A stretch of DNA of 64,000 bases from Asterias rubens (Eukaryota): assembly GCF_902459465.1 (NCBI RefSeq), contig NC_047069.1, forward strand, positions 8,556,001 through 8,620,000. Reading direction: 5' to 3'. This document shows positions 18,890 to 63,932 of this stretch, piece by piece. The notes under the pieces were generated by a model, which saw nothing but the letters and a program-made list of their open reading frames with translations, was not told the DNA's origin and ran no database searches. Each line of letters opens with the position of its first letter. Position 1 is the stretch's first letter. The translations under genes were made by a program, and so were the position numbers.

Positions 18890-18964
18890 ATATAGTAACT
18901 TGCGGGTACACCAATAATGTAAATCTCTCTGTGATAGTGTTGGCTCTGAAAACAGCCGGTGTGG

Positions 18965-19006
18965 TATCGACGTTTCGAACAGTAAACTCTGCTCGTCTTC
19001 AGGAAA
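18965..19006 (-). ncRNA. Minimal type I hammerhead ribozyme motif, best-preserved copy; head of a repeat spanning about 18896-19006
   Basis: Minus strand reads UUUC-CUGAAGA-C-GAGCAG(AGUUUA)CUGUUC-GAA-ACGU-C-GAUA: conserved core, 6-bp stem II, palindromic ACGU stem III, GUC cleavage triplet, stem I with 3 of 4 pairs. Confidence 0.72.
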
Positions 19007-21349
19007 ATCCGGTATTGTTGTCAATTAAAGGAACTATGTGAACCGTTTTTACTTGACACACAACAGGGGGGAAAGTACACGTTGAAAATATCACAACCGA
19101 CGGTGCTGAAAATGAAAACATCTGAAGGACTGTTATTATATGTTTCAGTGTAGGTCCACGTTATTTTAAACGGTTTATGTATTGACAAAAACACTATGCA
19201 ATTCGTGCCACCAATGAGAAAAATTTTCCTTATAATATATATACATTTTTTTTTTGCTTATATTTTTTTAACACAGTGCTATCACCGAAGAAAAACAATG
19301 TCAGGTAATCGGCAAAGACTATATAAACAGTGTCCTCACCAAATTTGTGTTCTGCTCTGAACAAATACACGCATTATTATTAAAAACACGACCCCGATTT
19401 GCATAGGTCCGTATAGAACAAAGTCAGAGCTGAATTGATGAGTTCCTGTCCCCTCAAGTAACGAAAAAAAAAATCGACGAAAATCCTCCCTATTTCCTTG
19501 AGGAATGTTCTTGGAGTGGGTGTGCTGTGGCAGAAGATCAATAACGTGCTAGAGAATCACGTCCCTGCATGTGCAAATTACTCTCGCACTGCATGAAAAA
19601 CGCTCACCATAAACCGGCTGAACGATTTTTTTTCCAGGGGATAAACAATACTGTGACGGGGTTTCAGGATAGACAACAAACATGCGCGGTCTGTATAGTC
19701 GTTGATCCATGATAAGTGCTCACCTGTTTTAGGCCCGTTAATTAAAATGCGTTATAAGTAAGATAGAAGGCCCTTTCCCCATATTTAAATCGCAAACAAC
19801 GTTACGCATCTTCGAAATGGAATCTCACATTGCTCTCAGATCTTAAAATCCGACACCATCATTGATTGTGGAAAGAAACCAGATACCGGTATTCCACTCC
19901 AAGAAGTGAAATAAACCAGATCGAATTTGTTGAGATTTCTATTGAAGGGTGTGTTGCCATTGTTGACGTGTCATATCACATCACACTCCGTCAAGATAAA
20001 TTGTAGTGCATTATGTGTTCCCTTTTCACCCTTACCTATCACTTCAATCACTGAGTGGCCCGGAGCCCTCTTCCTCTGCAAGGTGACCCCGCCTGGCCCA
20101 CGATTCTTCTGGCGTTATCGCTCACAGGAGATGTTGGTATTAACCCCCCATTATGTGCTGAATCACACTATAAGTCATAGTATTATTATCGGCTAAAAAC
20201 TGTCTACGTCGAATAGCTTTTCATATCCTGACGCTAAATATTGAATTTCTAGACATCGATATTTCGACTAAATTAGGCAGCACATAACAGTATGGATTAT
20301 AACTTGACAGGAGACAAATTGGCTAGTTAAAAAAAATACTTTTTAAGCGTCCCTGGATCTTCAGGTTTTGTCGTGAGTCCCATATTCTGGCAAACATGAC
20401 CCTCCCACTGAAGACAATAGTATTACACAAATAATAATTATGAGCATTTATATTATCTATAAACATTGTTAGTAAATTATTAACAATTATGATAAACAAC
20501 ATCATCAAGAACATTATTTTACAACTACCTTGTTTCATAAATGCATAAATGCAGATTTTCTTGTTATATGAATTTCGAAAATGTTGTTGTTTGTTAAAAC
20601 TAAATAATTACGCAACGAGATTTAACGTGATGCAATGATGACCTATAGTTTTTTGACAAGTGCAGTCATCCACCTTTAAGGTATCTGTCATTTAACTTGA
20701 TAAATCGGAAGACTCTATAAGTGGATGCGTTTACAATGCTGGATTGACTTTGTCATTTCCTTTTAGAGCGTTGACTCGTTTCATTAACTTTTAGTCGTTG
20801 ACATCTCCTCCCCCCTTTTGTATGCTTCTTGGCAAATTGTATTGGCCTTTACAAGCTGTTATTCCAAAAAGATAGCACCATCCCATATTGAACTGCTAAT
20901 CAATGCTTATCATTAATACTGTGGTGTTACCGCAAACCAAATATATATTGATACCTCGCCATGCATTGCCTTAAATCCTAAATTAATACTGTTGTTATTT
21001 ATATAATGGAATTTAAATAACTGCAGTTTCTGCTGCTCCAAAAAATGTCTCCAAGATGCAATACGTACTGAACCCTTTTTGAATCAACAGATTTGGGCTT
21101 GAGCTAAGGCTTGAGCTTCGTTCGCTTCAAGTTGATTAAAACCCCGTTTATAGATAATGGCACGTTTTCTAAGCCCAAGCCTAAGGTTTCTAAACCAGTC
21201 CGATTATAGCCAAAGTAACCGTAGTGTACACGAGCGGAGGTAAAAAGCATTTTCAGACGTCTTGTTGTATTGGCTATACAGTCTAAGTACTGGTAACTGT
21301 GGTTAATAAAACTTGATGAAGAAGTAGTCTAATGTTAAGCGTATGAATA

Positions 21350-21531
21350 ATAGACCGTTATCACGGTGTATGGCCATCTTGAATTTCTCCCATTGATATC
21401 AATGTTACCAAAACCGAGGCTGGAAGAACAAAATAGTCCGGTTCCTATTTGTACAATGATTATAAGCATACATTATTGTTATTCGCTAGTAGGAACAAGA
21501 CCAAGATGGAGGCAGTATGATACAGGTCTAT
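21350..21531. mobile_element. Short MITE-like element with ATAGACC/GGTCTAT ends; related fragment at about 36733-36800
   Basis: 7-bp terminal inverted match; internal GGCCATCTT...GTTACCAAAAC(C)GAGGCTGG shared between the two loci. Confidence 0.5.
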
Positions 21532-23144
21532 AAGGCATCAGTTTTGGATTATGTGCAGGCAAAGACACATACTTATGCAAACTATGCCACAGGCGAGGCA
21601 GCGAGTACACAAACCAACAGACAAACAGTCAATGCAAACAGGCCGGGAACAAACACCCTGACAGGCAAGTGGCAAAGAACAAACAAACAGACGGGCATAC
21701 AAAGACAGATGGCTTACTCTTAATGACAAAAACTTTCCTCTGATCACAACAGATCAAGCTTTGATAGATGTCTTATCATTATCAAAAGGCACTATATTTA
21801 TTTGAATACTTTCCACAGGGAAACTGTGGTGTCGTGGGAAATTACAGACAAAGAGCCATTTACAAGCGTGCAATTTAGAAAGTAAGTCAATGGGACTGAA
21901 ATTAAAAAGGGAATGAAGTAAATGGAGAGGGAGACTCTGGAAGGAAATTGGATCCCTACCACGGAAAATGGAAAGGTTAGCTAGAATGAACCCCCAATGA
22001 TGGAAAGTGACATGGGGAAAAACAAAACTTCAACATTAAAGAAAAGCAGCCGCGTCGAGCGGGCGAAAACATTTTAAAATATAAGGGGGGTAATCCACAG
22101 AGATTTATTGCTTTTCTGTGGCCCCAAATTACGTATATCTCCGCTGACAGTCAATTTATTCAGTGTAGGCCTTTTATAATTTCAACCAACTCAAGATATG
22201 TAGAAAAGATTGAGTTATGGAGAGATATATTAAGTCCATTCCAAATTAATTTCCGTTTGAGAGACTGATGGTGACATTGATTTAGTTAGATCTCAATCAC
22301 AGCCACTTTTTCCAAATGTCACAGCCTATCACAGGGGCCCGTCATGTATGAAATCGCAGCTTATTAAAACAATCAAGCACATCTTTCCTGCCGTGAATTA
22401 GATTGGATAAAGAGTCAATTATTTCGCTGCTATAGTGCCAGCGCTCGTCTTCCGCGGCCGGGGCACCTTTCAATCATTTCCCCGATTAAAGAAGACGGGA
22501 AATTATTCGATTTTTATCGATGATCCGTTCATTGACGCGTTAGGTTCATAGACTTCCGTCCAAATGTTGAACTTTTGCGAAAAAGGCAGCAAAAAGACAT
22601 CCAAGATGGTTATAAATTGTTCAAATACAAATGCTTATCTATAGACCCAATGATGTTGAGCTTTGTGTAGCACGACATATGCCAATAATAACGCAGTGCG
22701 CCAATTCCCTACAGTAAACATGCCACTACATCGAGTCTTGCTTTCTCAGCCAGCACTTTATAGAATTTGCTGTGCTATATTAACATCCTCGACTTGACAA
22801 AAAATAAATCGTCTGTTCGGGCGGACAAGGAACACCACGGTTTGAGAGCCTGTGTTATAGAGAGTTGATTATAATCACCATGCGTGGTTTATGGTCGAGC
22901 ACAATTGATGACAACATACGGAAAATGATCCCTATGCAATTGATCCAGCTTGGGCGATTCTGTCTGGGGTTGGATTTGCTTACTTCGCGGGTCGATACAA
23001 AATGTCCGGTTAGTTCAAATCTACATTTTCAAATTGTCTCCAGATTGTGTGACAAGTTCAGAGAGTCCAGCCCTAGGAAACCGTTTCATCAACATTTTAC
23101 ATGCATAAAAAAGCTTACTTAAATAAACTCCAACAATGGTCAGA

Positions 23145-23350
23145 GAGGGTTTGCGGTAAAACCCTTCAAAAAAGCTTTTTGAGTATTATTGGTTTTGAAA
23201 AAACGGTGGTTGAATGCTCAACGTTTCGATCAGTATGCACTGATTGTCTTCAGTAGAGCAAACTGGTCGAAACATTCAGCTATCAACCACTGATTCTGTT
23301 TATAAACAACGCTACTCAACAGAGCTTTGTACACGGTGTTACTGCAAACA
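23145..23350. repeat. Two degenerate hammerhead-repeat copies arranged head-to-head
   Basis: Minus copy 23217-23258 reads CUGAAGA-C-AAUCAG(UGCAUA)CUGAUC-GAA-ACGU-U-GAG with tail ...UUACCGCAAACC; plus copy from about 23253 has GTCGAAAC and tail TACTCAA...GGTGTTACTGCAAAC. Confidence 0.6.
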
Positions 23351-23596
23351 TCACCCACAAAATACTTCCACAATGCAAATCTTACGGAAAAATTAATATG
23401 AGCGTATTGTTCATATTAACGTTTCCAACAGATTTTCTTTTTTGGGGGGGTGGGGATCGAAGATGCAAAATTAAATTGATGAATTTTCTCCAAAACACGT
23501 GTCCTCAATATTCAAGAGCTGAGTTTGAAAACTCCAAACGAGTCCAATAATAGTGTAATAATGTAATGCCACTTTTTAATGGAGTATTTCCCTTAA

Positions 23597-23945
23597 AGGG
23601 AAGGTAACGTACTCAAAACGTAACTTAAAACTGCTTGGTAACGAGCATTGGAGAGCTGTTGATATAAACCATTTGTGGGAAACGACTCCCTCTGAAGTAA
23701 CGTAGTTTTTGAGAAAGATGTAATGTCTCACTAACATAATAAAAGACTTCTAGTTAGAAGTCTTTTATTCCTATCTGAAAGCACACACATTCGTCCAACA
23801 AGGGTGTTTTTTCTTTCACAATTTTCTCGCAACTTCGATGACCGATTGAGCACAAATTTTCACAGGCTTGTTATTTTATGCTTACGATGGGATACATTAA
23901 GTGAGAACACTGGTCTTTGACAAGTGCCGAACGTGTACAGTACCT
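23597..23945 (+). mobile_element. Kolobok-like MITE family 1, variant termini
   Basis: Body matches family 1; ends AGGGAAGGTA...TACCT; left TTAA, right TTAG. Confidence 0.8.
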
Positions 23946-26900
23946 TTAGGACAGCTGGGCAGTCCAGTGGCTATAATGTTCGAATTCATGATCAAATTCA
24001 TTTGGTGCATAATAACAGATCAACTGTAAGTGAATAGCTAACAAAATACCCTAGAAGTGATGAAATAAGAGCATTTGCGGTGTACAAGTGAAGTTTGAAA
24101 GTCGAGATGCCCCCTGTGCTCCGGTATGCGATGGGAATTTGTTGAATCAATTTCTGGCTCACGTGGATCGTCAACTCTGTGGTCAACAAGTGGCCAACTC
24201 AATTCATCTTTTCCTTTGAAATTAAAACCAAAAGGGGAGATGTCTGCTGAAGTACCCCATTCTTGATTTCTTTCTGCGAACGGTGTCTTGTGCAAATACG
24301 TCTGGCGTCAATGGCTTTTCTCAAAGTCCAGTTTAGGTTTCTTTATTTCGGTAATGAATAATTATATCATTGGAGATTTTAAACCCCATCTCTGAGGTGG
24401 GGGTTCCGTCTCCGTTGTGCTTGTATGCTCGGTGTGCTATCATAAGTCCGTTTTCGTTGGTTGGTTTCCCTCCTCCCTGACCAAGCATTCACCGCATTAA
24501 ACTCCCCAAACCCCCATCCTCATCTCGGCCATTTATCAAACGTCAGGTCGACCAGGCAATTAAGTGCGTGTCGGTTGGCTTTGCAATTGACCGTGCCTTG
24601 CCGATATGATGGTTGAATACACAGGCGGTGTACCCCTATATGCAAAATAATTTCCAAGGACTCGGGAATTCCGTCAATCTCTCAGGTGAATGTTGGCACT
24701 GCGGTATTATTAGCCATGGGGATGAAAAGTCATGTTTGTTTTCCCTGATCAAATTTCATAGCCTCTGTGGTTCAATGGAACATAGTAAGTCATGTATGTT
24801 GTTAGAGTCTTGCTTCTGTTTCACATTATACGGCTGTGATTAATACTGGTATGTTGCACCATACAGCTACTGGTTTCTCGTACATGCACATCATTAACAA
24901 ACCTTGATATTGACTTTATTTACTCATTTGTTTATCACATTTTCTTTACCGAGGGTATGCCTGAACACTTTAAACTGATTACCATATCGGGTTACATTTC
25001 GCATTAATTTAACTGCATGAGTTTTCTATCGTGCGTAATTTCCTATAAATTGACATTGTGAATTCACTTCAGGCAGCAATATAACACTATGATACAGCAA
25101 CAGATGCGGTTGTCCGATCACTATAAATAAGATGCTCCCTATTGCTTTTCGTACTTCACTATTTAATCTCTGCTGCAATCGTTATGGCAAAGCATTATTG
25201 TTCAAGTACAACACTTATAACTGTAGGTCTTGTTTAACCAATGAATTATCTCGGTAATCTTCTTAACTGGAATGATAAAGTTCATTCCATATATTTTTCC
25301 CAGAGGAGTTAGACACTGTGCGTTTTAAATCAACTGTCCATGTATGTTGACGTATCACCTTGTGGAGTACTGTCACACTTGGCCATTTTTACAGGCGACT
25401 TGGTGAAGGCAACAAATTGCAAACGCCGTCAAAATGGACACTTTGGTTCCCACAAGAGAAATGCCTATATCCTTAGAAGCTTCAGGAAATTTTGGGAAAA
25501 TCGATTGTGAATGGTGTCTGTCTCTTGAGACGGCAAGGAACCAGTTGCCAGAGTATTGCATGGTGTGACATTGAACTATAGAGACCGTGGAACCATTGGT
25601 AACACTTTTGAATGGTCTGTTTTTCCAAGCGTCGATGCAATTCGAAGCTTGTTTATAACCAATTCAAAAAATAACTGCGTAAATATGAAACTACTGTCAT
25701 AACAGTTAATGGTCCATTTTCTCTGTTTTAGGTGTGTGTTTTTAATTGATAATATTAAATTATTTCGTGTTTACTTACTTTTCATGTTTTTGTCACACCA
25801 AGTGACCCAACTGGCGTAAGCTTCTATAGTGACCCCTAAATTTGCAAGTGGCTCTGGTATAGCATTATCTTTTCGTAGAACAGTCGTCGTTCGGCTGCGT
25901 CGGACTACAAATATTGGAACGCAAGGGGGCGCTATTAGCTTTTTCAGACAGCTTTATCTCGAGGTAGAATTTTTTGTTTAGCCTATGCCTGTACAAAATA
26001 ATCCTCATTCAATAGTTGACTTTTCGTGCTCGAAAAACTTATGTTATGTGACTAAACGTTTATTATGTATTTTAAACCTAACTTTACTATCACCATTATG
26101 ATTTAACCGGATCCTTCAAAAAGCAAACATCATAACTTAGCATTAAAATTCCCCATACAAAATCAAATGACGTCTAATGTATATAAGGTAAGTGATGCAT
26201 TTACACCCGCTGTACTCATGTAGCCTGTATAGACCTTACTGGCCGATGCATATAGTACACACCTAATGGGCAATATTGGTAATTCATTTCGTCATAATAC
26301 GATGATTTGGACTTGATGTAACTTAATAAGTTTGTATTCTTTTTGAAGAGCCAAGACCTACATGTTTAATAGGCTTCCCGTCTGACATCCCCAAACTGTT
26401 ATTAAGGTCCGATAAGTAGTTTTCCCTTATCCCTTATATTGTACTGCCTAATGGTATGGAATTAAAACTGAAACTAGACTTGGATCCAAGGTTATGATCG
26501 TGGTTTTGTGTAGTCTACCCGATACCTATCCATTATTGCCTGATATAGCGCCCTCCGGCAGATTAACCTCCGTCATTGGATTGCGAGTTGGAGCGATTGA
26601 TAGCTAATTATGTCGGCCTGTTTTCGTGGCGGATGCAGAGGAATAACCGCGATCTCAGACTTGAATTTGAGTCTGACCTGAAACCTAAAACCTGAAACCT
26701 GAAATCTGACATTTCTATTAATAGTTTAACTCTTCATACTTCCAGCACTTTTTTTCTGTCAATAAAAATCAAATAAATATGGTTTGAAACATATATTCGA
26801 AATAGAATGTAACTATTTCAATAAATATTTAACATTATTTTGTAGAACAATATTGTTTACTCCACACAATTGTGACCGTGTGCCGCGGGTTGCAACGGGT

Positions 26901-27123
26901 TGCAACGGGTAACGTTGTTTGTGTTAATACAACATGTTGTGTCCATGGTGTACATTGGTTGAGCATGAACAACTGCTGGCAAAAGGTACGGAAAGAAATA
27001 TAATATGCCAAAGAGCATCTTGATAGATTTGGAGGCAAAGTGCCCAAAGGTGCTTACAATTAGTTTGAATACTTACAGTAGTGCTCACATTGCATTTAAT
27101 AATCGATTTAAAGAAAGACTTAA

Positions 27124-27493
27124 AGACACTTGACACAATATTGGTAATTGTCAAAGACCACTCTTCTCACTTGTGTATCTCAACATATACATAAACAAAC
27201 AAACCTGTAAATATTTGAGCTCAATCTGTCGTCGAAGTTGCGAGAAAATAATGAAAGAAAAAACACCCTTGTCACACGAAATTGTGTGCGTTTAGATGTT
27301 TGATTTCGAGACCTCAAATTCTAAATCTGGGGTCTCAAAATCAAATTCGTGGAAAATAACTAGAAAACTACTAATGGCACTTGAGGGGGAGCCGTTTCTC
27401 ACAATGTTTTATACTATCAACCTCTCCCCATTACTCGTTACAAAGTCAGGTTTTATGCTAATAATTATTTTGAGTAAATAGTGTCCACTGCCT
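27124..27493 (-). mobile_element. Kolobok-like MITE family 1
   Basis: Reverse-orientation body, TTAA on both sides. Confidence 0.88.
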
Positions 27494-45151: not shown

Positions 45152-47589
45152 GTAAGAATATGTTTTTCTTCTTTATAAAACGTAGCATAGTGTTGTTATA
45201 TAAATAGGTTGGTTTTGCTCTCCTTTTCTCTAAGAAGATTTTGTCACACGAGGGCGCAATTGTCACCGCTCAGGGATCGCCAGATTGTTGGTGGTTTACA
45301 CTCGTCATCACGGCGAAGGAGAATATATATGCATTCCTCAAAATATTAGCAATAAACGGGCGGTATTTTAATCCTTCATTGTAACTAAATTGCAAAATAC
45401 ATGTTGTTAAATGGATAGGGCACTTGAGACTCGATCATTGGAAGATGAAACTGTGTATTAAGATCATACAGTGTGTTTAGGTGTTGAATAAGCAGTCAAT
45501 ACCATTGATTCAGATACTAATGGATAATAAGACACTTGGTTTTTGTGACATGTAACAATCTCAGTAAACTTCATCCGTAGTGCACTGCTATCGGCACCCC
45601 CCCCCCCCCCTGCCTTGCCCCATAAAAGACGCTGGAGTGTATGGTTTGGATTAAATTACAGCAAGCAAAAGTATACTTTTTGTGATCACAACCAAAGCTA
45701 GCTCAGAAATTTTAGTCTCTGTAATGGTATTCATAAATATTTTGTATCTGTACATTGTTCATGTTGAATAGTTCAAACAGCAGGTTTGGATGGTTTGTAT
45801 TGTAATTTTGTTAGCTAACATGCAAGTTTACTTGTTGTCATAAAAAACAATGCAAGCTCACACCTGAACTATCTGTAATGGTTTTGCTAAAAGAGAAACA
45901 TAAGGGCATGTCAACGTGAAGTATCTTCTATATCGAAGTCTGGTTGACTTTAGAGGTCTGGAGCGATACATCAATGCAATGTCAATGTCATCTTTACAAC
46001 TACAAGTTTCCCCGCTTGCACAGTCAACAGGCATAGCAGTTTCCATAGCAACCATTTGGAAATGGGTGATGGCTGTATTACCGTAATTAAATATAAGTGT
46101 TGCTATATAATACGACGCTCGTCAAAACAATGTTATAAATCCACTTGTTAAACCTCTCTGCTGCCATTTTGAGATATGTTTAGAGTGGTGAATCCCCCCC
46201 CCCTAACCGTGCATGTGCTTGCGGATTTCCCGCTCTCCCACTTAACCATATATGTAAATAAAAAGCTTCTGTTCGTATGGGTGCTGATATTGGCGTAACT
46301 ATGGGCACACATTATGCGCATAATGCATAACTCCATGCCGTTTGCCAACCAATAGTTTACAAGGCATGCTTTAATGTAATTAGCATATTTTCATGGAAAT
46401 GGCTAATAATGGTAATATTGGTTGGTACTGACGCAATTTATGACTTTGTATTGTGTTGTATATTAAACGTTCGTTGTGGTAATTGTTTTCTTGTGTTGTG
46501 CGCTCTCTAACATCTGGCTGTACTATAAATCACTTTAAGCACCTCACTTTCTTTTTGACGAAATATATGAAATTAGCTCCTTTGTTCGCAAGTTTTTCTT
46601 ATGGATTTTTTTTACGTTTTTGATCTGCTGTTTTTGACCCAACTAACGAGTGCACTACATACCACCAAGTGAAGTGGTGATTCCATGTACAGTCATCTAC
46701 TTTATTTATTTTTAACTATTGCTGATTTTGGTTGTTTCAACCAAAATTAAGGCCGTGTTTTCCATGCTGAAAAAATGTGCATGGTTGTTCACTTTTTTTT
46801 TTCCATGGCTCTCACAGTCATACAAGGGACGTAGCCCAAATTTTCACATGTTTGTTTTTATGTATGCCGATTGTGTTGATCGCACAAAATATGAACACTG
46901 TTTGCGACAGTTTCTACATGGATCATTTAACATTTTATTGTCATTTTTGAACCCAGCGTGTGTGTGGGAGGGGCCGCATTTATAGTATGATTACATTGTC
47001 ATTGCATGCTTAGTAGCATCGAGCAAGCGTTAAAACTGTAGCAGCTTAAATAGAATGAGATACTGGACTTCGAGTGTCGTGTAGATTCCTCGCACCACCA
47101 TACTACAGTGGATCGATTGAGTAATCTGTGAGTAACCTTGACATCGATGAAGGGACCGAGAATACTAAGGATTGTTGAGTTGCAGATAATGGTCACTGAG
47201 TAAGGTGATGCAGAACAGGAAGCTGTGAGTGTTGTATTATCACTATACTCAACATCATTCAGGAAGGAGGACAGTATCCTTGTTGGTAAGTAACTTGTTT
47301 ACATATTGTTTTATTTAAACAACACAGTAATGTGTAATGAACAAAACAATAGGCCTAGTCTGCTCACCAAATTATGATTTCATTAGATATTTTGTAGTTT
47401 TATAATGTGTTTGCTCGTGTTTTAGGTAAATGTCTGTTTTGAAACCATTTACCCGGTAGTTACGCTGTGTGTCTCTAACGTCAAAAAGAAAACATACACA
47501 ACAATATTATAAACAAATGAAAACAAGTTTCGACTAACTGAACGTCTTATTCTTGTATCTGTGGTTGGTTTTAGCGAATGTTATAGTTA

Positions 47590-47680
47590 GGTTTGTGGTA
47601 ACACCATGTAGTGATATTCTCTAAATTAGTTGGGGTGGTTCTCAAAAGAACCGTTGGTTTTATCTCGACGTTTCCATCAG
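47590..47680 (-). repeat. Degenerate hammerhead-repeat copy with stem II deleted
   Basis: Minus strand CUGAUG-GAAACGUCGAG, then GGUUC-UUUUGA-GAACC hairpin and tail GGUGUUACCACAAACC. Confidence 0.55.
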
Positions 47681-48576
47681 CGAACGTCCTCGTAACAAAT
47701 ACTGAGAAAGTATCGAGTTAGCTGTTGAAACTGCTTTTCAACAAAATGGTCGACCTATGGTATAAATTCAAACACAACTAGTTGAATGGCCTTCGCAAAA
47801 GGCTGTGACACGGAAGAGAAGACAGGCCAATAATATTATTTGTTATATAGAAACTACTGTCGCAATTCCATGATATATGTATCCTTTTTTCTTTCGATGT
47901 GGAATTTTACGACTCCATTTATTCAAACTTCATAAAATTCACCACAAAAAGCCAGAGTTGATGGAACAATCATTCAATGTATACAACTAGGTAGCACAAG
48001 CAATAGCATGGTTTAGGCTATTTATAAATAATAACAATTATTGAGAATGAGTGGTGAAACAATGGTTACTTTTATGTGAAACATTTCCATCTGAAATAAA
48101 GTGATATTCCAGAAAAACATGTTTAAAAGCAGCCAGATGTTGTTGCTACAACCGAAATTGAGGACAGCGTGTTTCTATGCTGAAAAAATGTGCATTATAT
48201 TTCACTAATTTCTCCATGACTCGCATAACGGATTGAGCCAAAGTTTCCACAGGTTTTTTCATATCGTGTTATTGATCACACAAAACATGACATTTTGTCA
48301 GCGCAACCAATCATACCTTAAAGATTATATCTTTTTTGAAGCAAGATGTGCTGCTTGTTACCATAGCATCAACTTTCAATAACACTATCACACAGAGTCA
48401 ATAATAGCACCTGGGGTAAAAAATTATAGACAACGACACTACCTAAAGTACCTTAACTAAGTGTTTTCAAAGTTACAAGTGGGAATTGGTTCCCGCTAAT
48501 TTCATTAATGGCTAGACAGAAGGTTGGCTATACTGCAATGATTACTTACTGATGTTAGTTTAAAGCCAATCATTAG

Positions 48577-48973: not shown

Positions 48974-51900
48974 ATGCGAAATTCTTTTGTACTTAAATTG
49001 GTCGCCTTGAGTATTCTACTGTGTGTCTTACTCAATGTTATCATAAATGATGGAGGATCGTTCTTGCTGATTGAACGATCGGACAGTCTCACAGAATTCA
49101 AGAAAAGGTAACAAATATCCGAATATTGTATTCAAATGTCATGGAATCAAGAGCTGATTTTCTGATCAACTGACATAAATCATTGGTATCAGATTTACCA
49201 GTATTTGTTCCGTATGGTTCCTTGAATCACATAGAAATAAAATAACCAAACATGGGATGAGAGAAAAATCAAACTGTCATCATTATCTCTTTGATCCCAA
49301 CAATGTAAAATGGAAGGTCGTTTGGTAACCAATTAATGACAATAACAGCTTATTTTTTGTTCGTTTTAAAGGGTGTCTGTAACTTTTGTAGGACAAAAAC
49401 CACAATGTCCACAGATTTACACTAAACTAACACAGTTTGAAGATAATGATAGTAGAAAGCTTCCCTGAAAGTATTACGTGCTGAGGTGCTGTAGTTTTTG
49501 GGGAAATGAGTAAACAAAATGTGATGAAAATAATTTTCGTCTCATGAGACGAAAATTATTTTAATCATTTACAAACGTAATTTCATTACATTTTTTTACT
49601 AATTTCTCAAAAACTACAGCACCTCGGTAAGTAATACTTGAAGGGAAGCTTTCAACTATCATTATCTTCAAACCCTGTAAGTTTAATGTAAATCTGTGGA
49701 CATTTTGAAAAAGTACCCGAATCCTTTAAAATATGCATCTGCGTTAATATGATTCAAACAGTCCCAAAAACCGAAAGTATATTTTTAAGTTACTTGAAAG
49801 TTGTTTGTATTGCATTTGTGATTTCGATTGTAATGCGGAAATTGTCATTGCAGTTTTCCAGATCCTGTCAATATAGCACTCCCTGAAAACGAGATGCCTT
49901 CCCTGTCATCATTATTTCAGAATTTTTCCTCAATTGAAGATGAAGTCCTTTACATATACCAGAAATATATACTGGCAAACTGGACTCCTAAGCCAAAACT
50001 TCTGAAAATGATGAGGTATGTAATGTTTAACTTATCGTACGGTAACCTTTGATTTGAAAGACTTTAGCAATATTGCGCCTTTTTGTTCGTCAGATCAGTT
50101 TTATCGGTAGAGCTGTGCTTTTGTTGATCCAATTTGTTTTTATCCCGTTTCTTCTGAGGACAATCACAGCATATCTATAGTGTTCTTAACGTTGAGTCGT
50201 TAATCACCGGTTCTTTTCAGAACCAACACTATACTCAAAAGGAGATAGTCACATGATGTTACCGCAAACCTTATAGTTAAACGAGCTGTGTACTATCGTT
50301 TGCATTAAAATCATATTACTCAAATAAATTTAATGAATGGTTTGTCAAATCGTAAAAGCTCACATTCTATGAATCTAAGATCTAAAAGAACTGTCCATAA
50401 AGTTCCACGTAAAACTGCTCTACTTATAGTGACAGTCCAGTCCCCTACTCCAACAGACTTATCAACAACTCTCTTAGGTCACTCCCTCCATCCTTGTAAC
50501 ATTGTGTGTTTTTGTGTGCATTTTAGAACATTTTAAAATATTTTCGAATATTGATGTGATTTTGTATGGTCTCCCTGGTCAGTGTGCTTCTTTCTGTGCA
50601 ATATTTTTATGTGCTTTATGCATTTTGATTTCCTAAATACCTTCCTGTTTTTACTTAAATACAGTTTACAAATATTCCTGTTGTATTTCTTTTAATTCTA
50701 ATGTACACTTTTTTGTAATTCAGCCAGTAGGCTGCAATGAGCAGTTTAGTTTAATACACCATAATAATAATAATAATAGCACCAAAGATCGTATAGCGCC
50801 GTAGTAGGTGCGCCTGTCTGTGGTTATACTTCCTTCATGCTAAGTCCTAATTTCTCACTACCAACTTGTCATATCTTCTCATTATCCCTTTTGTTTTATT
50901 AGACGCGAGATCTTCCGTTCGTCTTCTTCAACCCAAGTTGACCAGATGACGTTGGCGTTAAGTAACGTCGATAACAATACCATATTGCCGTACTTTGAAC
51001 CCAATATCGGTCCAAATCCTAAAAAGTTCAAACCAAGTGCAGAACTCTTCAAGTATTTGCCCAAAGTAAGAGATTTCAAAATCACAAATTTTAATATTGT
51101 CAGTGTATCCATTGTCAAATTATTTCTAAATAGAGACGTTAATTATTCATTGAATGCAATTCAATTAAATTCAATTCATTCCAATTATGTTTTACACACA
51201 TACAGTGTCACACATACAGTGAAATTCACTTAGGTTTGCGAGTCTTAAACATCAAAATGACAAAAGGCACAATGACAAATACACAATATGCAAACATTAT
51301 GCAAAGATAACAACAGTGCAAACTTGCAAACCCCCGAAAACAGAATTAAGAAGTATTGATCATTCAGTAACCATGAATACATCTTTCCTCGACTTGTTTA
51401 ATTTTTTTCAGAATTTGAATTTCAAATAAATAAAATATATCGGTCAATCAAACTGATTTTGTTGGAATCGTTTGATCTCATTGACAGGACGCAACATTTC
51501 GAAAGGGAACTTTGTTCAAGAAGTGTAGTGTTGTCGGTAATGCAGGGCTATTGTTGCACAGTGCATGTGGGAAGGAAATCGACTCTGCTGATTACGTATT
51601 CAGGTACCAAGAATTAACATAATCTTTAAAACACTCCCGGGTATACGGAGCTCTGGAAGTGCCATTTAACTCTGTTTAGATCCTTATATTATACAGCAGG
51701 ATGATGACACTATAGATGAAGCGACATCCAGAGCTGATTTATCATTTAGCCCCTTTCACACGAAGGTAACTTAGCAAAGGTCCCTTGCTAAATTGTAGCA
51801 TTGTTGTAAAGCTTGTGAAAAGGACAACAATTTTTCTAGTTCTTTTGCAAAATCTTGTCAAGCATTGCTACTTTTTACAACCATGCTCAAATATTTAGCA

Positions 51901-55518: not shown

Positions 55519-56049
55519 AGTCACCTGGAAATATAATTTTTTTTTCTTTCAAACATAAGAGTATGCTTACGAACAATAAAACATATGTTTAAAAAATATA
55601 TAAAGTTGTTTGGGGGGCTGACTCCGCCTACCCCTTTTGTGACGTCAATCGAGGCAGACTTTGCCTGCAATGCGTATAGTAAACACACGTGTAAAGTACA
55701 TGTACGTCCAAGTCGTGAGTTGGTACGTTTCAAAAAGTGTTTTTCTGCATTCAGCAGCAGTACACCTGGTCGGCATTGCCGGGAAAAACCCCCAAAAAAT
55801 CTTTTTTTGAAACGTACAAACTCACGACTGAGCAATTGTGTTTACTCTACGCATTACAGGCAAAGTCTGCCTCGATTGACGTCACGAACAGCCCCCTCTT
55901 GGGTTGGGGTCTACTCTTAAATTTGTAAATAACATAAGAACTGATTTTTAAAAAAAACTTAGTTAACTGTTTATTCACATTCCACTCATCAAAACACATA
56001 TATTAGTGGCAAAAGCTTTATTTTGAAAAAACACCACTTCCAGGTGACT
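55519..56049. mobile_element. TTAA-flanked MITE family 3 with two CRE-containing internal inverted repeats
   Basis: TIR AGTCACCTGGAA/TTCCAGGTGACT, TTAA at 55515-55518 and 56050-56053; internal inverted segments at about 55640-55688 and 55839-55886. Confidence 0.88.
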
Positions 56050-57608
56050 TTAAAGCTCAATTTGGTTATTGGAGTAACGGAAAAAAAAGTGGGATTACAA
56101 AAAACTGTAAATGTTTTCACTAAAAGCTTTTTTTTCCTAATCTAATGTATTTCACGCAAAGAACCATTTAAATCGAAGTTTCCCACCACTATCTTCATAC
56201 CTAGTATTATGTTAATACCTGTGAACTTTTATAACTTTACTCTCAATGTTTATGCACACAATTTAAAACACCAGCTTATAACCTAGGTATAAATGCATTT
56301 TGTGTGTGGTAAAGGACAAAATGAGAGAGATGATAGTGGTGTTTGTATACAGCTGCAGTCAAACAAGCGATGAGAATTTAAAACGAAAACATATACTAGT
56401 ATTGCTTGCAAACAGCAGCAAAAGAAAACCAGCTTTTGAATGCAAATTTGTTATCATCAAATGAAAAACGATCATTGATATACAAAAAAAGTGAACGTGT
56501 TGAAATGTTTTCATTTTTTTTTTCAAAAATAAAATGGAATCACACCCTACCCAAGATACTTTTCGATGACCATGCGAATAACAGGTTTACCACATGTTTC
56601 GCATGTTTGGTTTACGCATTTAACTCTCTAACCCAATTACAGACTGAACAAATATATATAATACTTTTGACGGCTGTAGGCTATATTATTTTGTGACAGC
56701 TCACGTATTGTTGATTTACCATTAAAACCACTACAAGCTGTAAAGAGTTTGCGAATTATTGCTAGAAATCATCCTAAACTGACATATGTATCCTCGTCAG
56801 TTTACTTAAAAAGGGTCCCTCAAGATGATCAATAATCGCACACCATGAAAATATGAAGCATGTATGACAATATGACATGTGCCATTTAGCAACTTGAACC
56901 TCCTGGATGTTGAGCCTAAATTGGGGTGGTTTATAGGGGCCATGCACCGGCGACGTACTCGCTGTATTATTTGTAAATAACAGAAACCTTTTGAGGCAAT
57001 ACGCCTGTGGCATCCGTACGGGTTGGAGAGCAGTCTGAATGGGTGTCATCAGCGCCCCATAAGGAGAGTCCCTGATTTTATAAACAAAAACCCACTCCAT
57101 ATGTTTGGATAAGAACAAATTCTCGACCCAGATCGGTAAAAATAGCAACCCATAAGTCAGCAAAACAATGATAGGAGACTGATTATATTTAAGTGAGACT
57201 GGTTTACGTTTTTCACAGCAAAGTGGGTACTTGTGTTTAGACCCCCCAGAGTTGTTTGTAAATATTACTTGAATATTATAGTGTTGCCAATGTCCTTTCT
57301 TTTTTAATTGTAAGCTTATTTTTGACTTGTGACTTTGCCTAATATGCTGCCACAGCAACATTCTCTCTCCTGCTAAATTGTTCATACGAGCAGTGCTGCA
57401 TTTGAACATATTTTAGTTCTTCTTGCTGTTACCATGACTCTCCTCATATATTTGTGTATTTGTTAGAGTTACCATATGATATTTGTCAAAGTTGCTCAGG
57501 CGGCAAAGCTATTATTTCCGAACCGGTCGAATCGAATGGTGTATTGACCGGTAGGGTGCATATGGATCAAGGTTGTAACCGCCAGTCGTAAAGATTTGTG
57601 TCGTAATA

Positions 57609-57629
57609 GTGTGTGTGTGTGTGTGTGTG
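57609..57629 (+). repeat. (GT)n microsatellite
   Basis: Directly visible. Confidence 0.9.
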
Positions 57630-58360
57630 CGTGTTTTTATCGTTATTTGTTTTTCTTCTCTAAATTAAGGAGTTCTTGCGAACAAGTTTGTTCCAAGTTT
57701 GATGTAATTCAATTGCCAGGTCTGGAATTATTACAGAGTTTTACCTGGAGCACGTTTGATGCTATTGACTGATATTGTCAAACCCCTACCATGATGTTAT
57801 TATGATGTGCAAATACATCACAGGAAACCCAGGCTATAATATTCACATGAGTGACCCCTTTGTGATTGTAAACAAAATACAGAAAAGATGGCAACTTGAT
57901 TAGAAGCAGGAATAATTAAGATTAATTAGTGTAACAGTTCTACTGCATAGTCTGACAGACATTATCCCTGGTTGGTTAGACCAGCCTTTACATGCACTTA
58001 ATAATGAAATGTGGTGTTTCCCTTGTGTGTTTTTTGTTTTTGTTTTGTCCTTATGAAACAAACTTTAAAAGTGTTTTGCTGAAACTTGTTATTGCTTGAT
58101 TACTCAGTCATTCCAATGAAATCAATATATTTTAATCAACTTATTGCACTTATTATCTAACTTCGGCCACGTGAAATAAAATTGCATTTGTACACCTCTA
58201 CTTTAACCTGGTATGCCATTCAACTTGAAGATCCTACAACTGGCACTACTTGTGACGTCTGTTGTATTGGACCCCATATCGCCCTGACCTATCACATAAA
58301 GTCACTCACCCTGATCTTTAACTATTAGCTTAGTAATGCTCCCAACGGTTGGCAATTGCC

Positions 58361-58429
58361 ATTGGTCTATTCCTAACATTACCAATCCAGTGGGGTCGGC
58401 CTTTTCGCGTGTTACGTGCGGTTATAAAA
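58361..58429 (+). promoter_or_regulatory. Candidate ACE core promoter: ATTGG (58361), CCAAT (58382), TATAAAA (58423)
   Basis: Two CCAAT boxes 40-60 bp upstream of a TATA box, about 155 nt before the ATG. Confidence 0.45.
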
Positions 58430-58581
58430 AAAAATCACTAATTCGCCTCTCTACAAACTTCTGTGTGGAAGACACAATAATCGCGTGAGGGTGCCCGGCA
58501 CTGTACTTTAAATTGAGCTGAGCAGTTCATTGATCTTAAAGACACAATTTTTAAGACATTATTCTCGGAAGTGGGGACATC

Positions 58582-61500
58582 ATGTTGCCCCGTTGGAGTC
58601 GGGGGTTTTCTCTGATCGTATTAGTCGTATATTTGAAGGGTTCGCTCGTTAATGTCGCAGTCTCTCGGGAGTTGAGTGGCAACGTGGATGAAGCACGGAG
58701 GTTCTTGGAATATTATGACAATCTGGCGGCCCATACTTGGCCAGGAGTTGTACAAAAGATGTGGAATTTCAACTACAACATCACAGAGTCTACACGAAGT
58801 GAAATGGTGAGAATTTATTTGTGTTTTAGTTAATCTTATATAAGGACATTTTGTTTCTAAACTATTTTATAAGTAGGTGTACCCATAAGTTCCATGTAGG
58901 CCTAGTTGATTAATCGATGACAAGAATGGGCTGATTGGTATAAAGTTAATTTATAGGTTTTTTCGGCCTATTTCGGAAAAAGAGCAGCCAATTTAACCAT
59001 CAAGCTATTCTATTTCGCGCGAAATCGAATGCTCCTGAACAGGCTCATTCGATTTCGTTTTATGATTAGTCAAATGTAATGTTGCGTCATTCGATTTAAC
59101 AAAATAATCATTCAATTTAACAATTCATCAAAGCAGCATTCAAATTCGCAGTCGCTTCTTGAGGCGTGTTTGTCACGAAAAAGAATGACGGTTCGCTAAA
59201 TTGAACAGAGTGCTAAAGGAATTTGACTCGACTTAAGATGAAATTGAATGGCCGAATTCTGAATTTGAAACGCAGTAACAACTAGAGAGGCAAAACAGCT
59301 TTAATTCGAACGCATGAAAATGAAATTGGCTGCTCATTTGCCGAATTTGACCGAGAAAAGCTATATTATATTATTAAAACATTTCAAACGCAGATAACTT
59401 CAGCAGTCAAATGCCAACCGAATCCCTACTACCCTTTTGGCCATGCTGTAGATTCGCACACGTTTTACCTCATATCATTTGATGTGTTTAACCACATGAG
59501 GATTCATCCTACAGGGGTAATAACTGAACATAAAAACTGTTAAATCACGCTCCTTAAAAGGGACATGTGATGTTATTTATAAAAACGGGCCGATCCAAGT
59601 CTCTTTCGATTTGTCTTGTTAATCTGAGATGGTATTTACTTGCACGTGAAAACTGACACAGTTGGTGATGACACACTACATTAATCATATCAAAGATAGC
59701 TCCTGGAGATAGTCAGTCCGTCTGAACAAATTAGGCCAATGTCGATTCACGATATGAGAAGTGACATTACTGAAAATGTCAAGGTGACGCTTGGCCTTAA
59801 AGGCATTGGACACCTTTGGTAATTAAAAAATGACCAGTCTTCTATCTTGGTGGTGTATCCCAACAAATGCATACAATAACAAACCTGTGAAAATTTGAAC
59901 CCATTTGGTCGTCGAAATGCGAGAAGTTGCGAGAGAATGATGGAAGAAAATGCACCCTTGTCGCACGCCTTGAGTTTGAGACCTCCAGCTGAGGTATCGA
60001 TTTCAATTCAAATATTTTAGTGAGAAATTACTTCTTTCTCAAAAACTACGTTACTTCAGATGGAGCCGTTTCTCACAATGAGTTAAACTATCAACAACTC
60101 TCACTTGCACATTACCAAAGTAAGTTTTGAAAGCTAACAAATTCTTTGAATAATTACCAATAGTGTCCACTGCCTTTAAGACCATATCGAATTACACGCC
60201 ATGGTACATGCCAATTTCACATCACATTCGCAACTTCGTTTATCAGTTGGTATTTAATAAAGCAGAATAAAAAAAAATAAAAAAATTCTTATCAGAGCAG
60301 TTTACCAGCAATCATTCCATGAAGTTTACATTGTAGCGACCGTTGTCCCTCGTATTTTGCTAATCCAAGATATATTCTAAGCGGTATTTTCTGCTGCAGA
60401 CAGCTTTATTATAGACCCAATTTCATAAAGATTGTTCAGTAGAAGTTTTCTGCTTACGGAGCCACCCCTTGCAGAATTGGTATACTTTATCAACACAATA
60501 TAACCGCTTAATGCACGCACAGTCATGTCAGCTGTTTACATTATGACATCACAATCAAAATCAATGGCGAACGTGCAAGTTGGCCACCTATTCTTGCTAA
60601 ATACAATTCGTTTAAGATTAAGCAATTTTTTTGACAGGCCTATATAAATTAGTTAGCACGAACATTCTGCTAGCCTTGAACAGCACTGCGACACTGGCTT
60701 CAGGGGCACCTCGAAGATCTCCCTATTTAATGATGACATTATTTTTCTTTACAGATTGAAGCTAGACTCGTGTATTCTGAATTCAGTAAGCAAGGAAGAG
60801 ACAACGCGTCGAGGTTTAACATGACAGACTTCCCGCCTGACATCAAACGTCAACTCACAAAGATCATGGTTAATGTTGGCGAGAATGCATTCAGGAATAT
60901 AACCAAGTTAGAAGAGGTACAGTGGAACATTAACGAAATTGTGTGATATTAGTTTGGTTTGGATTTGAACAAAAGACAAATTAACTAGAGTGGGATGGGA
61001 TTTGAACCAAACGTGCTATCTAAAGCCTTGTCAATGTATTTGTTCAGGGGTCCAGTCAGAAGTCGTACAACATTAACGGTCGTCAGAAGTCATACAACCA
61101 TTAACGGTCGTGTAGCCAGGGATCACACCAAGTTTACCACACAAACTGGGACGTAGCAGCCAGGGGGATGCCACTAAAGGGCATGCGATTATGGACTGGA
61201 TAGCAGTCACTTTAATCCAGAGGTCGTTGGTTCCAATCCCGCTCTTGTCAATTTGTTTTCGTTCATTTTAAATGTTATACACATAATGAATGTTTATGAG
61301 TGCAATGGTGCGAATATGTTCATGAGTTGAAAGATGGAATGTTCTATTCAACGAGGCGGAGCCGAGTTGAATGGAACATTCCAGCTTTCAACGAATGAAC
61401 ATATTCGCACCATTGCACGAATGAAAAACATTCATTATTTGTTTTATATAACATCCAAGTAGAACTTTGTCATTTTGATTGAAAGAAACAACTTTCAAAA

Positions 61501-63932
61501 CAAACAATTTCAACTGTAGAAGCCGAATGCTAGTAATTTTACTATGCCTTCTTGCAGTAACACCTGCTGCGTTACCAAAGACACGCGCACGCAGTGATGT
61601 TTTTACTCAGCTTTTTCGTTCCATCCGAAAAGTACCATTGCACGCTGGCAGCGTGCCAGCGTGCAATGGTACTTTTCGGATGGAACGAAAAAGCACGGCG
61701 AGTGACTCAGCGTGCAATGGTACTTTTATTTGCTATCACGTGACGGACAATCCTCCAATCAAATGGCAAGGATCTGCTTGGGTGTTATATAAAACCAGTT
61801 AGTTCCTCTTGTTGTTTACTATCTGAATATTAATTTGAAAGCTCCCCTGACCGAAATTAGTGTTTTTTATATAACAGCTACAGATAAGTATAGCCAAAGG
61901 TGTTTAACCTCTAAAATACATTGTAGAATAACACTCAAAATATTTAAAGGTTGTTCACAGCTTATATACTATATACAATTCAGGTATATAACAGGGAAAC
62001 GTTCTTTGTATACACACAAATAAAATGTTTAACTTATAAAAAGTTACATTCAATGCTCATGACATCCACACATCTCTTTTTATAATTTCAGCTGAAAAGT
62101 GTTAAGAGTCAAATGAAGTCTCGATATTCTCAGGCGAAGTCATGCAAATCAAATGAGAACTCGACCGAAGCATGTATGCCGTTTGTGCCAGGTAAGATGA
62201 TTTCTTAATCAAATGATTTTAATCATATTTTTTTAAACCAGAAAAAAAAGTTCTACCCACGAACACAAAATAAAGAAAGAATAGGCAGTGGTTCGATGCA
62301 TACAAAATAAATTGACGTGGAGAAACTGCATTAACCATTGTATATAAAGACACTGGGCACATTCGGTAATTGTCAAAGACCAGTTTTCCCATTTTGGTGT
62401 ATCTTAACATATTATGCACAAAATAACAAATGTGAAACTCCATTAGTCGTCGGAAGTTGCGAGAAAACAATGGGAGAAAAAAAACACCCTTGCCAAACGA
62501 AGTTGTTTGCTTTCAGATGCTTGATTTCGAGAACTTGAAAATCTAATTCTGAGGTCTCGAAATCAAATTCGTGGAAAATAACTTCTTTCTCGAAAACTGC
62601 GTTACTTCACAGGGAGCCGTTTCTCACAATGTGTTATACTACCAACAGCTCTACATTGTTTATTACCATGTAATGTTATATGCTAACAAATATTTTGAGT
62701 AATTACCAATAGTGTCCACTGCCTTTAAACACCTGCTTATTAATAGTAACACACATTTCTGCTTATGGTTTATGAATTTAGGTTAATCGCTGTAAAATCC
62801 ATCTAAAGTGCATTGACAATACCTCCAACCTGTGAAAGCTCTCTATTTTCCCAGATGTTTTACCAGCCAAAAAAAATAATATATATATAATTGCAACCAA
62901 AATGTGCATTATGAATCCTCTGTGTGGTCAAGCTTATCATAAATAATGACAGTGAGTATAATTTATTAATGTGTACAGATGCAGAGAATCTAATGGCAGA
63001 GAGTCGCAATTATACAGAGCTCTTGTATTTATGGGTAAGCTGGCGAGAAGCCACTGGCCCAGGTGCTCAGCCAACATTCCAGAGATATGTTCAACTAAGC
63101 AATATGGCTGCACATGACAACGGTAAAGAGTCAACTTGTTTCTTTGCATACAATATTCGTGTTATTAAAAAGGTAGTGAGTGGAACTTTAAGCTTTAGCT
63201 TGTGCTGAAAATTAAAAGGCCCTTTAACCAGTAAACTCATGTGTACCATGTCTAAGGATGTTGGCTCAGAAATGAACCGTTGTGCTCTTGACTTTTCTAG
63301 CAAGACAATAATTGTGCTCTTTCTCCTGAAGACAAGCAGAGTGTGCTGTTCGAAACGTTGAGACTACATCGGCTCTTTTCAGAGTCAACATTAATCCTGA
63401 AAGAGTTGTACACCATGTTTGTACCCCGCAAGTTTACTAGTTATAGTTACTTCGTAAAGGCAAAGTACACCTTTGGTTTTTAGAACCGGTGGATTTTTTT
63501 AATCTAATGCTACAAAAAACTAAAATGTACAAATTTCATTTTAAAGAACTCGTCGCGTCTTGAGATAACGCTGAAAATCCGCAGCGAATATGTACAAGCT
63601 AAACCCTAGTAATGAATACACATTCTAAGAAGCGTCTACAGCAGTCACGCTTTACTGTAGTAACGCTTCTCAGATTCAAATTTTGGGGATATAAAAAAAA
63701 AGAGTTTATTTGAGTTTTTTAAATTTCTTATTTCGTTTAGACCAACCCGACAAGGGAGCGATGTGGCGATCATGGTACGAGGTTGATGACCTCGAAACCC
63801 AGGTGGATAACATCTACGACCAGTTGCGACCCCTGTACACAAACCTACATGCCTACATCCGCCGAAAGTTGTATAAGATTTACGGTCCGGAGTTTGTTAA
63901 TCTCCGCGGCCCAATACCGGCACATCTACTAG
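58582..63932 (+). CDS. ACE: Angiotensin-converting enzyme-like M2 peptidase, 5' part; join(58582..58806,60755..60916,62092..62191,62979..63122,63741..63932), continues beyond the window
   Basis: Signal peptide; WNFNYNIT; M..RYS.AKSC..C..P; MAESRNYTELLYLW.SWR; YVQLSN.AA; GAMWRSWYE; L.PLY.NLHAYIRRKL; GPIPAHLLG. All GT-AG with consistent phases. The HEXXH zinc motif is not within the window. Confidence 0.95.
58982..59335. repeat. Fold-back MITE-like element in ACE intron 1
   Basis: 13-bp inverted ends GAGCAGCCAATTT/AAATTGGCTGCTC; left half has repeated CATTC(G/A)ATT, right half the complementary-type motifs. Confidence 0.55.
59801..60175 (-). mobile_element. Kolobok-like MITE family 1 in ACE intron 1
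   Basis: TTAA flanks, reverse-orientation body. Confidence 0.85.
60967..61264. repeat. Element with inverted tRNA-like (B-box) ends
   Basis: Left end reverse-complements to GGTTCAAATCCC..ACTCTAGTTAATTTGTCTTTTGTTC; right end reads GGTTCCAATCCCGCTCTTGTCAATTTGTTTTCGTTC. Confidence 0.55.
61283..61795. repeat. Composite double-hairpin element in ACE intron 2
   Basis: 156-bp imperfect palindrome 61283-61438; 19-bp inverted repeats 61441-61459 / 61777-61795; perfect 41-bp hairpin 61610-61694. Confidence 0.8.
62348..62724 (-). mobile_element. Kolobok-like MITE family 1 in ACE intron 3
   Basis: Reverse-orientation body, right TTAA intact, left flank ATAA. Confidence 0.85.
63322..63363 (+). ncRNA. 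Minimal type I hammerhead ribozyme motif in ACE intron 4 (sense); repeat extends to about 63437
   Basis: UCUC-CUGAAGA-C-AAGCAG(AGUGUG)CUGUUC-GAA-ACGU-U-GAGA: perfect 4-bp stem I, A.C mismatch at the base of stem II, GUU triplet. Confidence 0.55.

Follow-up and report, generated by a model that had tools for sequence, protein, structure and literature searches.

Penelope-like elements (PLEs) carry in their pseudo-long terminal repeats (pLTRs) a minimal form of the hammerhead ribozyme, which is recognized by an additional base separating position 9 from 10.1, by the pairing of G10.1 with C11.1 and by the lengths of helix II (6-8 bp) and helix I (4-5 bp), and in which a palindromic 15.2-16.2 segment without loop 3 implies action as a dimer (Cervera & de la Pena 2014, PMC4209133). 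Hallmarks of the insertions that PLEs leave behind are a tail, partial tandems and a neighbouring copy that is both inverted and 5'-truncated (Craig et al. 2021, PMC8557442). For the PLE of Anolis, an internal start of the reverse transcriptase (RT) at two adjacent sites explains an optional tail of 30-40 bp, both DNA strands are cut and extended, and hammerhead cleavage is dispensable for insertion, the main template being the uncut RNA (Frangieh et al. 2024, PMC11167929). For the non-LTR retrozymes of animals, a descent from the pLTRs of PLEs has been argued (Cervera & de la Pena 2020, PMC7229834; Li et al. 2026, bioRxiv 10.64898/2026.07.22.740005). Here we describe a family of short repeats noted in a 64,000-nucleotide stretch of the Asterias rubens genome (assembly GCF_902459465.1, contig NC_047069.1, positions 8,556,001 to 8,620,000; hereafter the window, whose own numbering is used for all features within it). 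The unit begins with a predicted PLE-type hammerhead, directly behind which stand a hairpin and a purine-rich motif that read as the 3'-processing cassette of the host's histone genes. To our knowledge, the formation of 3' ends of the histone type is considered almost confined to replication-dependent histone genes.

The 5' part of the unit agrees with every sequence criterion of the PLE minimal hammerhead. Its consensus, UCUC CUGAAGA C GAGCAG-AGUAUA-CUGUUC GAAA CGU C/U GAGA, supplies the core positions C3 U4 G5 A6 N7 G8 A9, G12 A13 A14, the A15.1-U16.1 pair and an H17 other than G (CUGAAGA ... GAAA C G U C/U), and is found with an exact core in 206 genomic copies. The extra base between positions 9 and 10.1 is a bulged C after CUGAAGA; helix II is a 6-bp stem (GAGCAG/CUGUUC or GAUCAG/CUGAUC) closed by G10.1-C11.1, with 91% of its cells paired; and helix I measures 4 bp (UCUC/GAGA), or 3 bp in subfamily 2. 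No helix III loop is present, the palindromic A-C-G-U lying directly between GAAA and the cleavage base, and cutting would therefore be possible only as a dimer. The core, the bulged base at 9/10.1, the G10.1-C11.1 pair, the 6-bp helix II, the 4-bp helix I, the palindromic 15.2-16.2 segment and the massive dispersal are thus those of PLE pLTR hammerheads (PMC4209133), from which the unit differs in that its ribozyme heads a short, stand-alone repeat rather than the pLTR of an element bearing an open reading frame (ORF), and in that a histone 3' cassette directly follows. A hammerhead head accompanied by PLE signatures is, taken alone, ordinary.

The second hairpin is located 11-16 nt after the predicted cleavage site, in agreement with the 10-20 nt given for it in the initial annotation, and by its sequence is a histone mRNA 3' stem-loop. 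It conforms to GGYYCU-UUUC-AGRRCC with flanks of the SLBP type, and a purine-rich downstream element, AAAAGAGAU, begins 11-13 nt past its stem. The 3' ends of the host's own histone genes were examined through explicit pattern searches only, anchored on the C-terminus of H3, and were recovered for three of the four full-length H3 hits. All three H3 genes carry a 16-nt GGCUCUUUUCAGAGCC identical to that of subfamily 1, with CC before it and with ACAC or ACCA (ACCAC.. or ACACA..) and an A-rich run behind it, and the identical 16-nt stem-loop recurs at sites adjacent to H2A and H2B. At the H3 genes and beside H2A/H2B-type hits, the pattern search placed AAAAAGAGA 11-13 nt past the histone loop; histone sites combining the stem-loop with AAAAAGAGA are C5:1900685, C5:1902629, C5:5778053, C5:5779335, C7:5972865, C7:19590389 and C7:19596871. 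Some 170 element copies carry ACCACUCCUUCAAAAGAGA, the reading of one subfamily, after the loop, nearly the same as the ACCACUUAUUCAAAAAAGAGA that adjoins a histone gene. The best genomic score against the Rfam model of the histone 3' UTR stem-loop (RF00032), 34.6 bits at locus L062, stands above the gathering score of 34 bits. The element has in common with the histone pre-mRNA 3' signal (RF00032, RF00066) a 6-bp/4-nt stem-loop with the sequences on either side of it, the spacing, and a purine-rich downstream motif that complements the U7 5' end; what differs is that the cassette of the element stands not behind a histone ORF but 11-16 nt behind a hammerhead cleavage site, dispersed in thousands of copies. 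No histone ORF was found upstream of any unit of the window, the hammerhead being there instead. Mature histone mRNA lacks the downstream element, and the cassette must therefore have been captured from a gene flank or an unprocessed transcript.

Two same-strand arrays elsewhere in the genome (G000:C4:2336844-2343665 and G000:C11:5372715-5380384) consist of a perfect histone-type stem-loop followed by ACAACUUACAAAAAGAGA, repeated at a spacing of ~470-1660 bp. A histone-fold search (PF00125) gave no hit at either of them, and they may be arrays of H4/H1 genes or something else.

Two candidate U7 snRNAs, 6 kb apart, were found on one contig, at G000:C17:9503699-9503755 (L091:1501-1557, minus strand; 28.6 bits) and G000:C17:9509743-9509797 (L092:1501-1555, minus strand; 27.1 bits). 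A UCUUU box, an Sm site close to the consensus and a 3' hairpin are present in both, the two hairpins differing in sequence with their pairing kept. At the 5' end, both candidates present AUCUCUUUUGAA, the exact 12-nt Watson-Crick complement of the UUCAAAAGAGAU of the element. The best duplex between element and candidate reached -17.9 kcal/mol, a value matched by 1 of 1000 shuffles; RNAduplex picked an off-target site on the subfamily-1 consensus, and the subfamily-1 variant with UUCAAAAGAGAU was judged through direct complementarity. The 12 nt of complementarity available to the downstream element of the unit compare with 8-9 nt for the real histone genes. A tRNA (39.8 bits) lies near the first candidate, at L091:1038-1110.

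Across the 417.6-Mb assembly, first-look searches returned more than 1,100 candidates for each of two subfamily queries, and the family amounts to thousands of copies in the Asterias rubens genome. An exact pattern (CUGAAGA, 18-20 nt, GAAACGUYGA, 8-18 nt, perfect stem-loop) matched 206 times and its reversed control not at all, which puts the motif far beyond chance. Most copies have fixed ends. In 25 of 30 subfamily-1 loci the copy opens abruptly with (U)UCUCC, on the base with which hammerhead helix I begins, 36 nt before the predicted cut, and the 3' ends of this subfamily fall at either ~136 nt or ~175 nt, both at CUUA and ~38 nt apart; subfamily 2 has the same two alternative ends. The copies are surrounded by target-site duplications (for example at L003, L010, L013 and L022), head-to-head inverted pairs recur genome-wide, 5'-truncated copies are present, and one locus (L004) provides a tandem array, of the kind that the initial annotation had proposed to look for, with three units and a 180-bp period. 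Five of 30 copies extend upstream by 35-103 nt into a common sequence with variable truncation points, which hints at a longer parent element. In these copies (L012, L015, L018, L028 and L029) the common extension ends in ..CCACCACCGCCAGCAGUCCAGCA immediately 5' of the unit; the consensus of RNA-seq loose ends that precede the unit start ends in GUCCAGCA. At least three subfamilies can be told apart, and 31-mers of the unit are present in runs carrying four organism labels.

Target-site duplications, an optional tail of 30-40 bp, inverted 5'-truncated neighbours and partial tandems are the hallmarks of PLE insertion, and since the signature of the family matches them, we read the element as mobilized by a PLE. 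The parallel (PMC11167929, PMC8557442) includes two 3' ends 30-40 nt apart, head-to-head copies, a hammerhead ~100 nt upstream of the 3' end and a template of uncut RNA; the departures from it are that no ORF for an RT or endonuclease and no matching autonomous element were found, and that the 5' end is sharp at helix I. The earlier attribution of the units to a non-autonomous, hammerhead-headed retroelement of the Penelope sphere therefore fits the sequence data, with their target-site duplications, 38-nt optional tail, inverted pairs and tandem array. The genome also houses a young resident PLE family (L031-L060, for example L056, L052 and L049), whose frames reach 921 aa and for which at least 118 GIY-YIG hits were counted. 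The 3' tail of this PLE, ~580 nt long, contains a minimal hammerhead of its own (CUGAAGA A GGUCC..GGAUC GAAA GCU A) ~25 nt before the insertion end, of the same build as that of the unit and with A-G-C-U at the palindromic place. An in-frame ATG, and indels whose lengths are multiples of three, had suggested that the 3' part of the unit might be the start of a PLE ORF; this gained no support, 150 genomic long-form copies opening only 35-315 aa.

The three helices of the unit are paired in 91% of cases across 33 copies, compared with 27-41% for slid controls. The stem-loop takes the form GGCUCU-UUUC-AGAGCC in one subfamily and GGUUCU-UUUC-AGAACC in the other, its variable pair being C-G in 23 copies, U-A in ten and broken in none, and the variable pair of stem II is G.U in 21 copies and U-A in six. 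Both covariations reported earlier are thus real, but the changes on both sides of a helix come down to two events, one compensatory pair per hairpin, that divide the subfamilies, rather than to many independent ones; nor is the 6-nt loop of stem II constant, as had been stated, since AGUAUA and AGCAUA differ by one letter between subfamilies. Two subfamily-level events are not a statistical test of covariation. More telling is the blockwise conservation seen when the subfamily consensuses are compared: the stretches kept are the hammerhead, the stem-loop together with the adjoining ACAC, AAGAGAU, CACAUGGU..ACC.GCAA, CCAUGCAAAG.UUCAAA and UACUUA, and the spacers between them have diverged through indels and substitutions. 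The tails split by subfamily as originally described. Together, compensatory pairs and conserved blocks with diverged spacers would point to selection on master copies.

A covariance model of 33 genomic copies, used to search the window, matched it seven times, at 63316-63437 (+, 98.8 bits), 18894-19012 (-, 95.3 bits), 50144-50274 (+, 84.2 bits), 23144-23265 (-, 66.2 bits), 47586-47703 (-, 49.1 bits), 23233-23354 (+, 44.5 bits) and 63219-63338 (-, 38.7 bits). The first six correspond to all six unit positions of the initial annotation; the seventh is a newly found inverted copy. No Rfam family reached its gathering score anywhere in the window; in a permissive scan of 18000-64000, RF00032 matched at 50204-50249 (+, 33.2 bits), 47612-47657 (-, 32.9 bits), 63366-63410 (+, 22.3 bits) and 18917-18962 (-, 19.4 bits). 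The window copies are all old and unequally damaged: the hammerhead core is intact at 18821-19007, 23142-23257 and 63321-63456, and the stem-loop is perfect at 50209-50224 only.

Subfamily 1 is represented by a short form at 63321-63456 (+; consensus nt 1-136, 82% identity), with CUGAAGA at 63326-63332, GAAAC at 63352-63356, a predicted cut after 63359, a histone-type stem-loop at 63371-63386 whose second pair is G.U, and GAAAGAG, resembling a histone downstream element (HDE), at 63399-63405. A degenerate subfamily-1-like copy, unlisted in the initial annotation, lies head-to-head with it at 63187-63332 (-), the two 5' ends overlapping. The long form of this subfamily, at 18821-19007 (-), has insertions within its AT-rich tail, an intact hammerhead core with CUGAAGA at 18996-19002, a stem-loop at 18942-18957 with one broken pair and the HDE-like run AGAGAGAU. 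Subfamily 2 has a long form at 50149-50318 (+), in which a 7-nt insertion into stem II and the change of GAAAC to UUAAC have destroyed the hammerhead, while the stem-loop (50209-50224; RF00032, 33.2 bits) is perfect and the HDE-like run is CAAAAGGAGAU. The short form of subfamily 2, at 23142-23257 (-), retains the hammerhead core (CUGAAGA, AAUCAG/CUGAUC, GAAACGUU), its stem-loop having decayed through a deletion and transitions, and forms the second head-to-head pair of the window with an inverted partner at 23255-23379 (+), a subfamily-2 copy that is 5'-truncated at consensus nt 18, reaches the long-form tail and has lost both hairpins to decay. A third variant, with ACCCCA after the stem-loop, occupies 47553-47691 (-); its hammerhead is destroyed and its stem-loop, at 47637-47652, has the loop UUUG (RF00032, 32.9 bits). 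The tail fragment that had been noticed near 20923 proved to be a real 5'-truncated copy at 20896-20980 (+), covering subfamily-2 consensus nt 75-154, that is, the tail blocks without hammerhead or stem-loop.

The pair at 63187-63456 is contained in an intron of a Peptidase_M2 (angiotensin-converting-enzyme-like) gene, whose consecutive exons at 62957-63133 and 63749-63937 (+) match positions 122-180 and 180-242 of the Pfam profile PF01401; the copy at 63321-63456 is sense to the gene. Another dispersed hairpin repeat is probably responsible for a weak match to Rfam mir-3036 (~29.8 bits; gathering score 70) that was obtained both at 27299-27347 (+) of the window and at an unrelated locus, L004:2960-3008 (-).

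We consider it likely that a non-autonomous, SINE-like retroposon of ~136 or 175 nt, which captured a histone cassette and was mobilized in trans by the RT/endonuclease of a PLE, gave rise to the units, and that these are its dead copies. The RNA of such an element would consist of a PLE-type minimal hammerhead in its 5' part, a histone pre-mRNA 3'-processing cassette from the 3' flank of a host histone gene in its middle (an SLBP-type stem-loop and, 11-13 nt later, a U7-complementary downstream element), and, in its 3' part, conserved blocks ending in two CUUA sites 38 nt apart. The PLE enzyme would bind the 3' blocks and start reverse transcription internally at either CUUA site, as the Anolis PLE does in vitro, sometimes on both DNA strands, which would give rise to the head-to-head pairs. 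The template would be uncut RNA, because at each of the two cleavage sites the copies contain the sequence that precedes the cut as well as that which follows it. The cassette would be kept by selection in master copies, where it probably recruits SLBP and/or U7 snRNP, or else gives those transcripts that do not serve as templates a protected, non-polyadenylated end.

Several observations weigh against this explanation. The U7 candidates score below the Rfam gathering score of 34. Rfam hammerhead models gave no match at gathering score, at E<=10 in the window or at E<=1 in young copies; such models presuppose a hairpin on helix III, which the minimal type lacks. The sharp start of most copies at helix I is not predicted by simple 5' truncation and stays unexplained, and an element that used its cassette would thereby lose its RT start sites, which makes the benefit of the cassette to the element unclear. 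Apart from the hammerhead, the tail of the resident 921-aa PLE is unrelated to the unit and without a stem-loop, and no autonomous partner with the tail of the unit was found in limited sampling. The linkage to GIY-YIG/RT Penelope ORFs that the initial annotation had suggested looking for did not materialize: tblastn of PLE ORFs detected no RT or GIY-YIG within 1.5 kb of 60 unit loci, bar an unrelated fragment in L021; blastn of the unit against 30 GIY-YIG loci gave no match, and a motif scan found no stem-loop there; and by eye, on contigs C1-C3 (about half of the unit places), no unit and GIY-YIG places came within 3 kb of each other.

The same holds for expression. Thousands of reads from three raw-read RNA-seq runs labelled as the same species fell on a young copy, with equal coverage in both orientations and with 90-96% of the reads continuing into unrelated flanks. 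None of the three runs showed enriched read starts or ends at any place, the hammerhead site included, where small or non-polyadenylated products would be missed, and neither enriched ends 4-5 nt past the stem-loop nor a fall in depth after the loop was seen in these libraries, which are probably blind to short non-polyadenylated products. Depth tracks the genomic abundance of the short and long forms, and the best 15 of 70 RNA joints were for the most part junctions between inverted copies; a few were short joints of the goes-back and skip kinds, and none was of the head-to-tail type. The signal is passive read-through transcription of dispersed copies. Since the libraries would miss short or non-polyadenylated products, the reads neither show nor exclude processing of master-copy RNA.

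It is possible, at a level of belief that we would call tentative, that the cassette is a neutral hitch-hiking relic of one chimeric retroposition, in which a PLE tail was fused with the flank of a histone gene or with histone pre-mRNA before its processing, and that it does not effectively bind SLBP or U7. RNA-seq without histone-type ends or loss of depth past the loop is what such a relic would give, cleavage at the cassette would remove the RT start sites, and the evidence for constraint amounts to only two subfamily-level compensatory events. A relic sits less easily with the fact that at least three subfamilies, diverged with indels in the spacers, retain a perfect stem-loop (6 bp, 4 nt) followed by ACAC/ACC and, at 11-14 nt, by AAGAGA, that the sole change in the stem is compensatory in 10 of 10 copies, and that the downstream element of the unit complements the U7 candidate better (12 nt) than do those of the real histone genes (8-9 nt).

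An origin as a non-LTR retrozyme, propagated through tandem transcripts, hammerhead-cut monomers, circles closed by tRNA ligase and rolling-circle reverse transcription, appears unlikely. Like the animal retrozymes (PMC7229834; bioRxiv 10.64898/2026.07.22.740005), which occur as monomers and tandem arrays, the unit is non-autonomous, AT-rich, hammerhead-bearing and within or near their ~170-400 nt; the 180-bp array exists, and hammerhead, AT-richness and target-site duplications all resemble those of retrozymes thought to stem from PLEs. The retrozymes are, however, built on tandem canonical type I hammerheads that yield circular RNAs, whereas the unit has a minimal, PLE-type hammerhead and a single three-unit array, monomers predominating. 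Nearly all copies are monomers with fixed ends that start 36 nt upstream of the cleavage site, at which no enrichment of RNA ends was seen, and the lack of head-to-tail joints among the best 15 of 70 is also at odds with circles. The ribozyme-processed, circular-RNA retrozyme put forward in the initial annotation is thus not borne out.

The same annotation had taken the second hairpin for an RT-recognition or tertiary-contact element of the ribozyme, the resemblance to histone signals then being fortuitous. Such a role would suit a hairpin near the hammerhead that is conserved with a compensatory change, as PLE reverse transcriptases recognize structured RNA near the hammerhead (PMC11167929), but it is rendered very improbable by a 16-nt stem-loop identical, letter for letter and with its flanks, to that of the host's H3, H2A and H2B genes, by the 12-nt complement to the U7 candidate at the canonical distance, and by the lack of such a hairpin in the resident autonomous PLE. 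Given the identity of the stem-loop, the common flanks and the 12-nt complement, chance resemblance of the whole cassette is not credible. That the units, short and dispersed and with a histone 3' signal as they are, should be remnants of histone genes (processed pseudogenes or orphons) or a LINE-mobilized SINE is hardly conceivable, given that none in the window has a histone ORF upstream, that mature histone mRNA carries no downstream element, that thousands of hammerhead-headed copies have no poly(A) or microsatellite tail, and that the signature of tails and inversions is PLE-specific.

How much of this PLE-borne retroposon is new can be stated in two parts. The initial annotation had proposed an undescribed system; the class of the element, a PLE-derived non-autonomous retroposon with a minimal hammerhead, is known. 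What appears new, as read from the sequence, is that a mobile element carries a histone 3'-processing cassette which is complete and matched to the host. A full-text search of the literature, which did not cover Dfam or Repbase, found nothing that joins the histone stem-loop, SLBP, U7 or the HDE with a retrotransposon, Penelope, a SINE or a hammerhead. Histones go unmentioned in the key PLE and retrozyme papers, and the histone stem-loop specifically in PMC7229834 and bioRxiv 10.64898/2026.07.22.740005.

For PLEs, the family offers a very small RNA, of 136-175 nt, that apparently holds everything required for mobilization in trans, and a unit with two RT start sites of a kind so far known only in vitro, from a lizard element. 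The copies would also be a natural experiment on what makes a histone signal work outside histone genes, on whether they serve as a sink for SLBP and U7, and on whether they provide a route by which the signal spreads to new genes. We regard it as conceivable, though doubtful, that the cassette works, in that RNAs of the element would bind SLBP and U7 snRNP and thereby tie a Penelope-dependent retroposon to the S-phase pathway of histone mRNA. If it does, the tie could run via the stability of the RNA, via its export or via a contest for U7; the copies, in their thousands, would be scattering ready-made histone-type 3' end signals through the genes of the host, and these could be a source of non-histone genes with histone-type ends.

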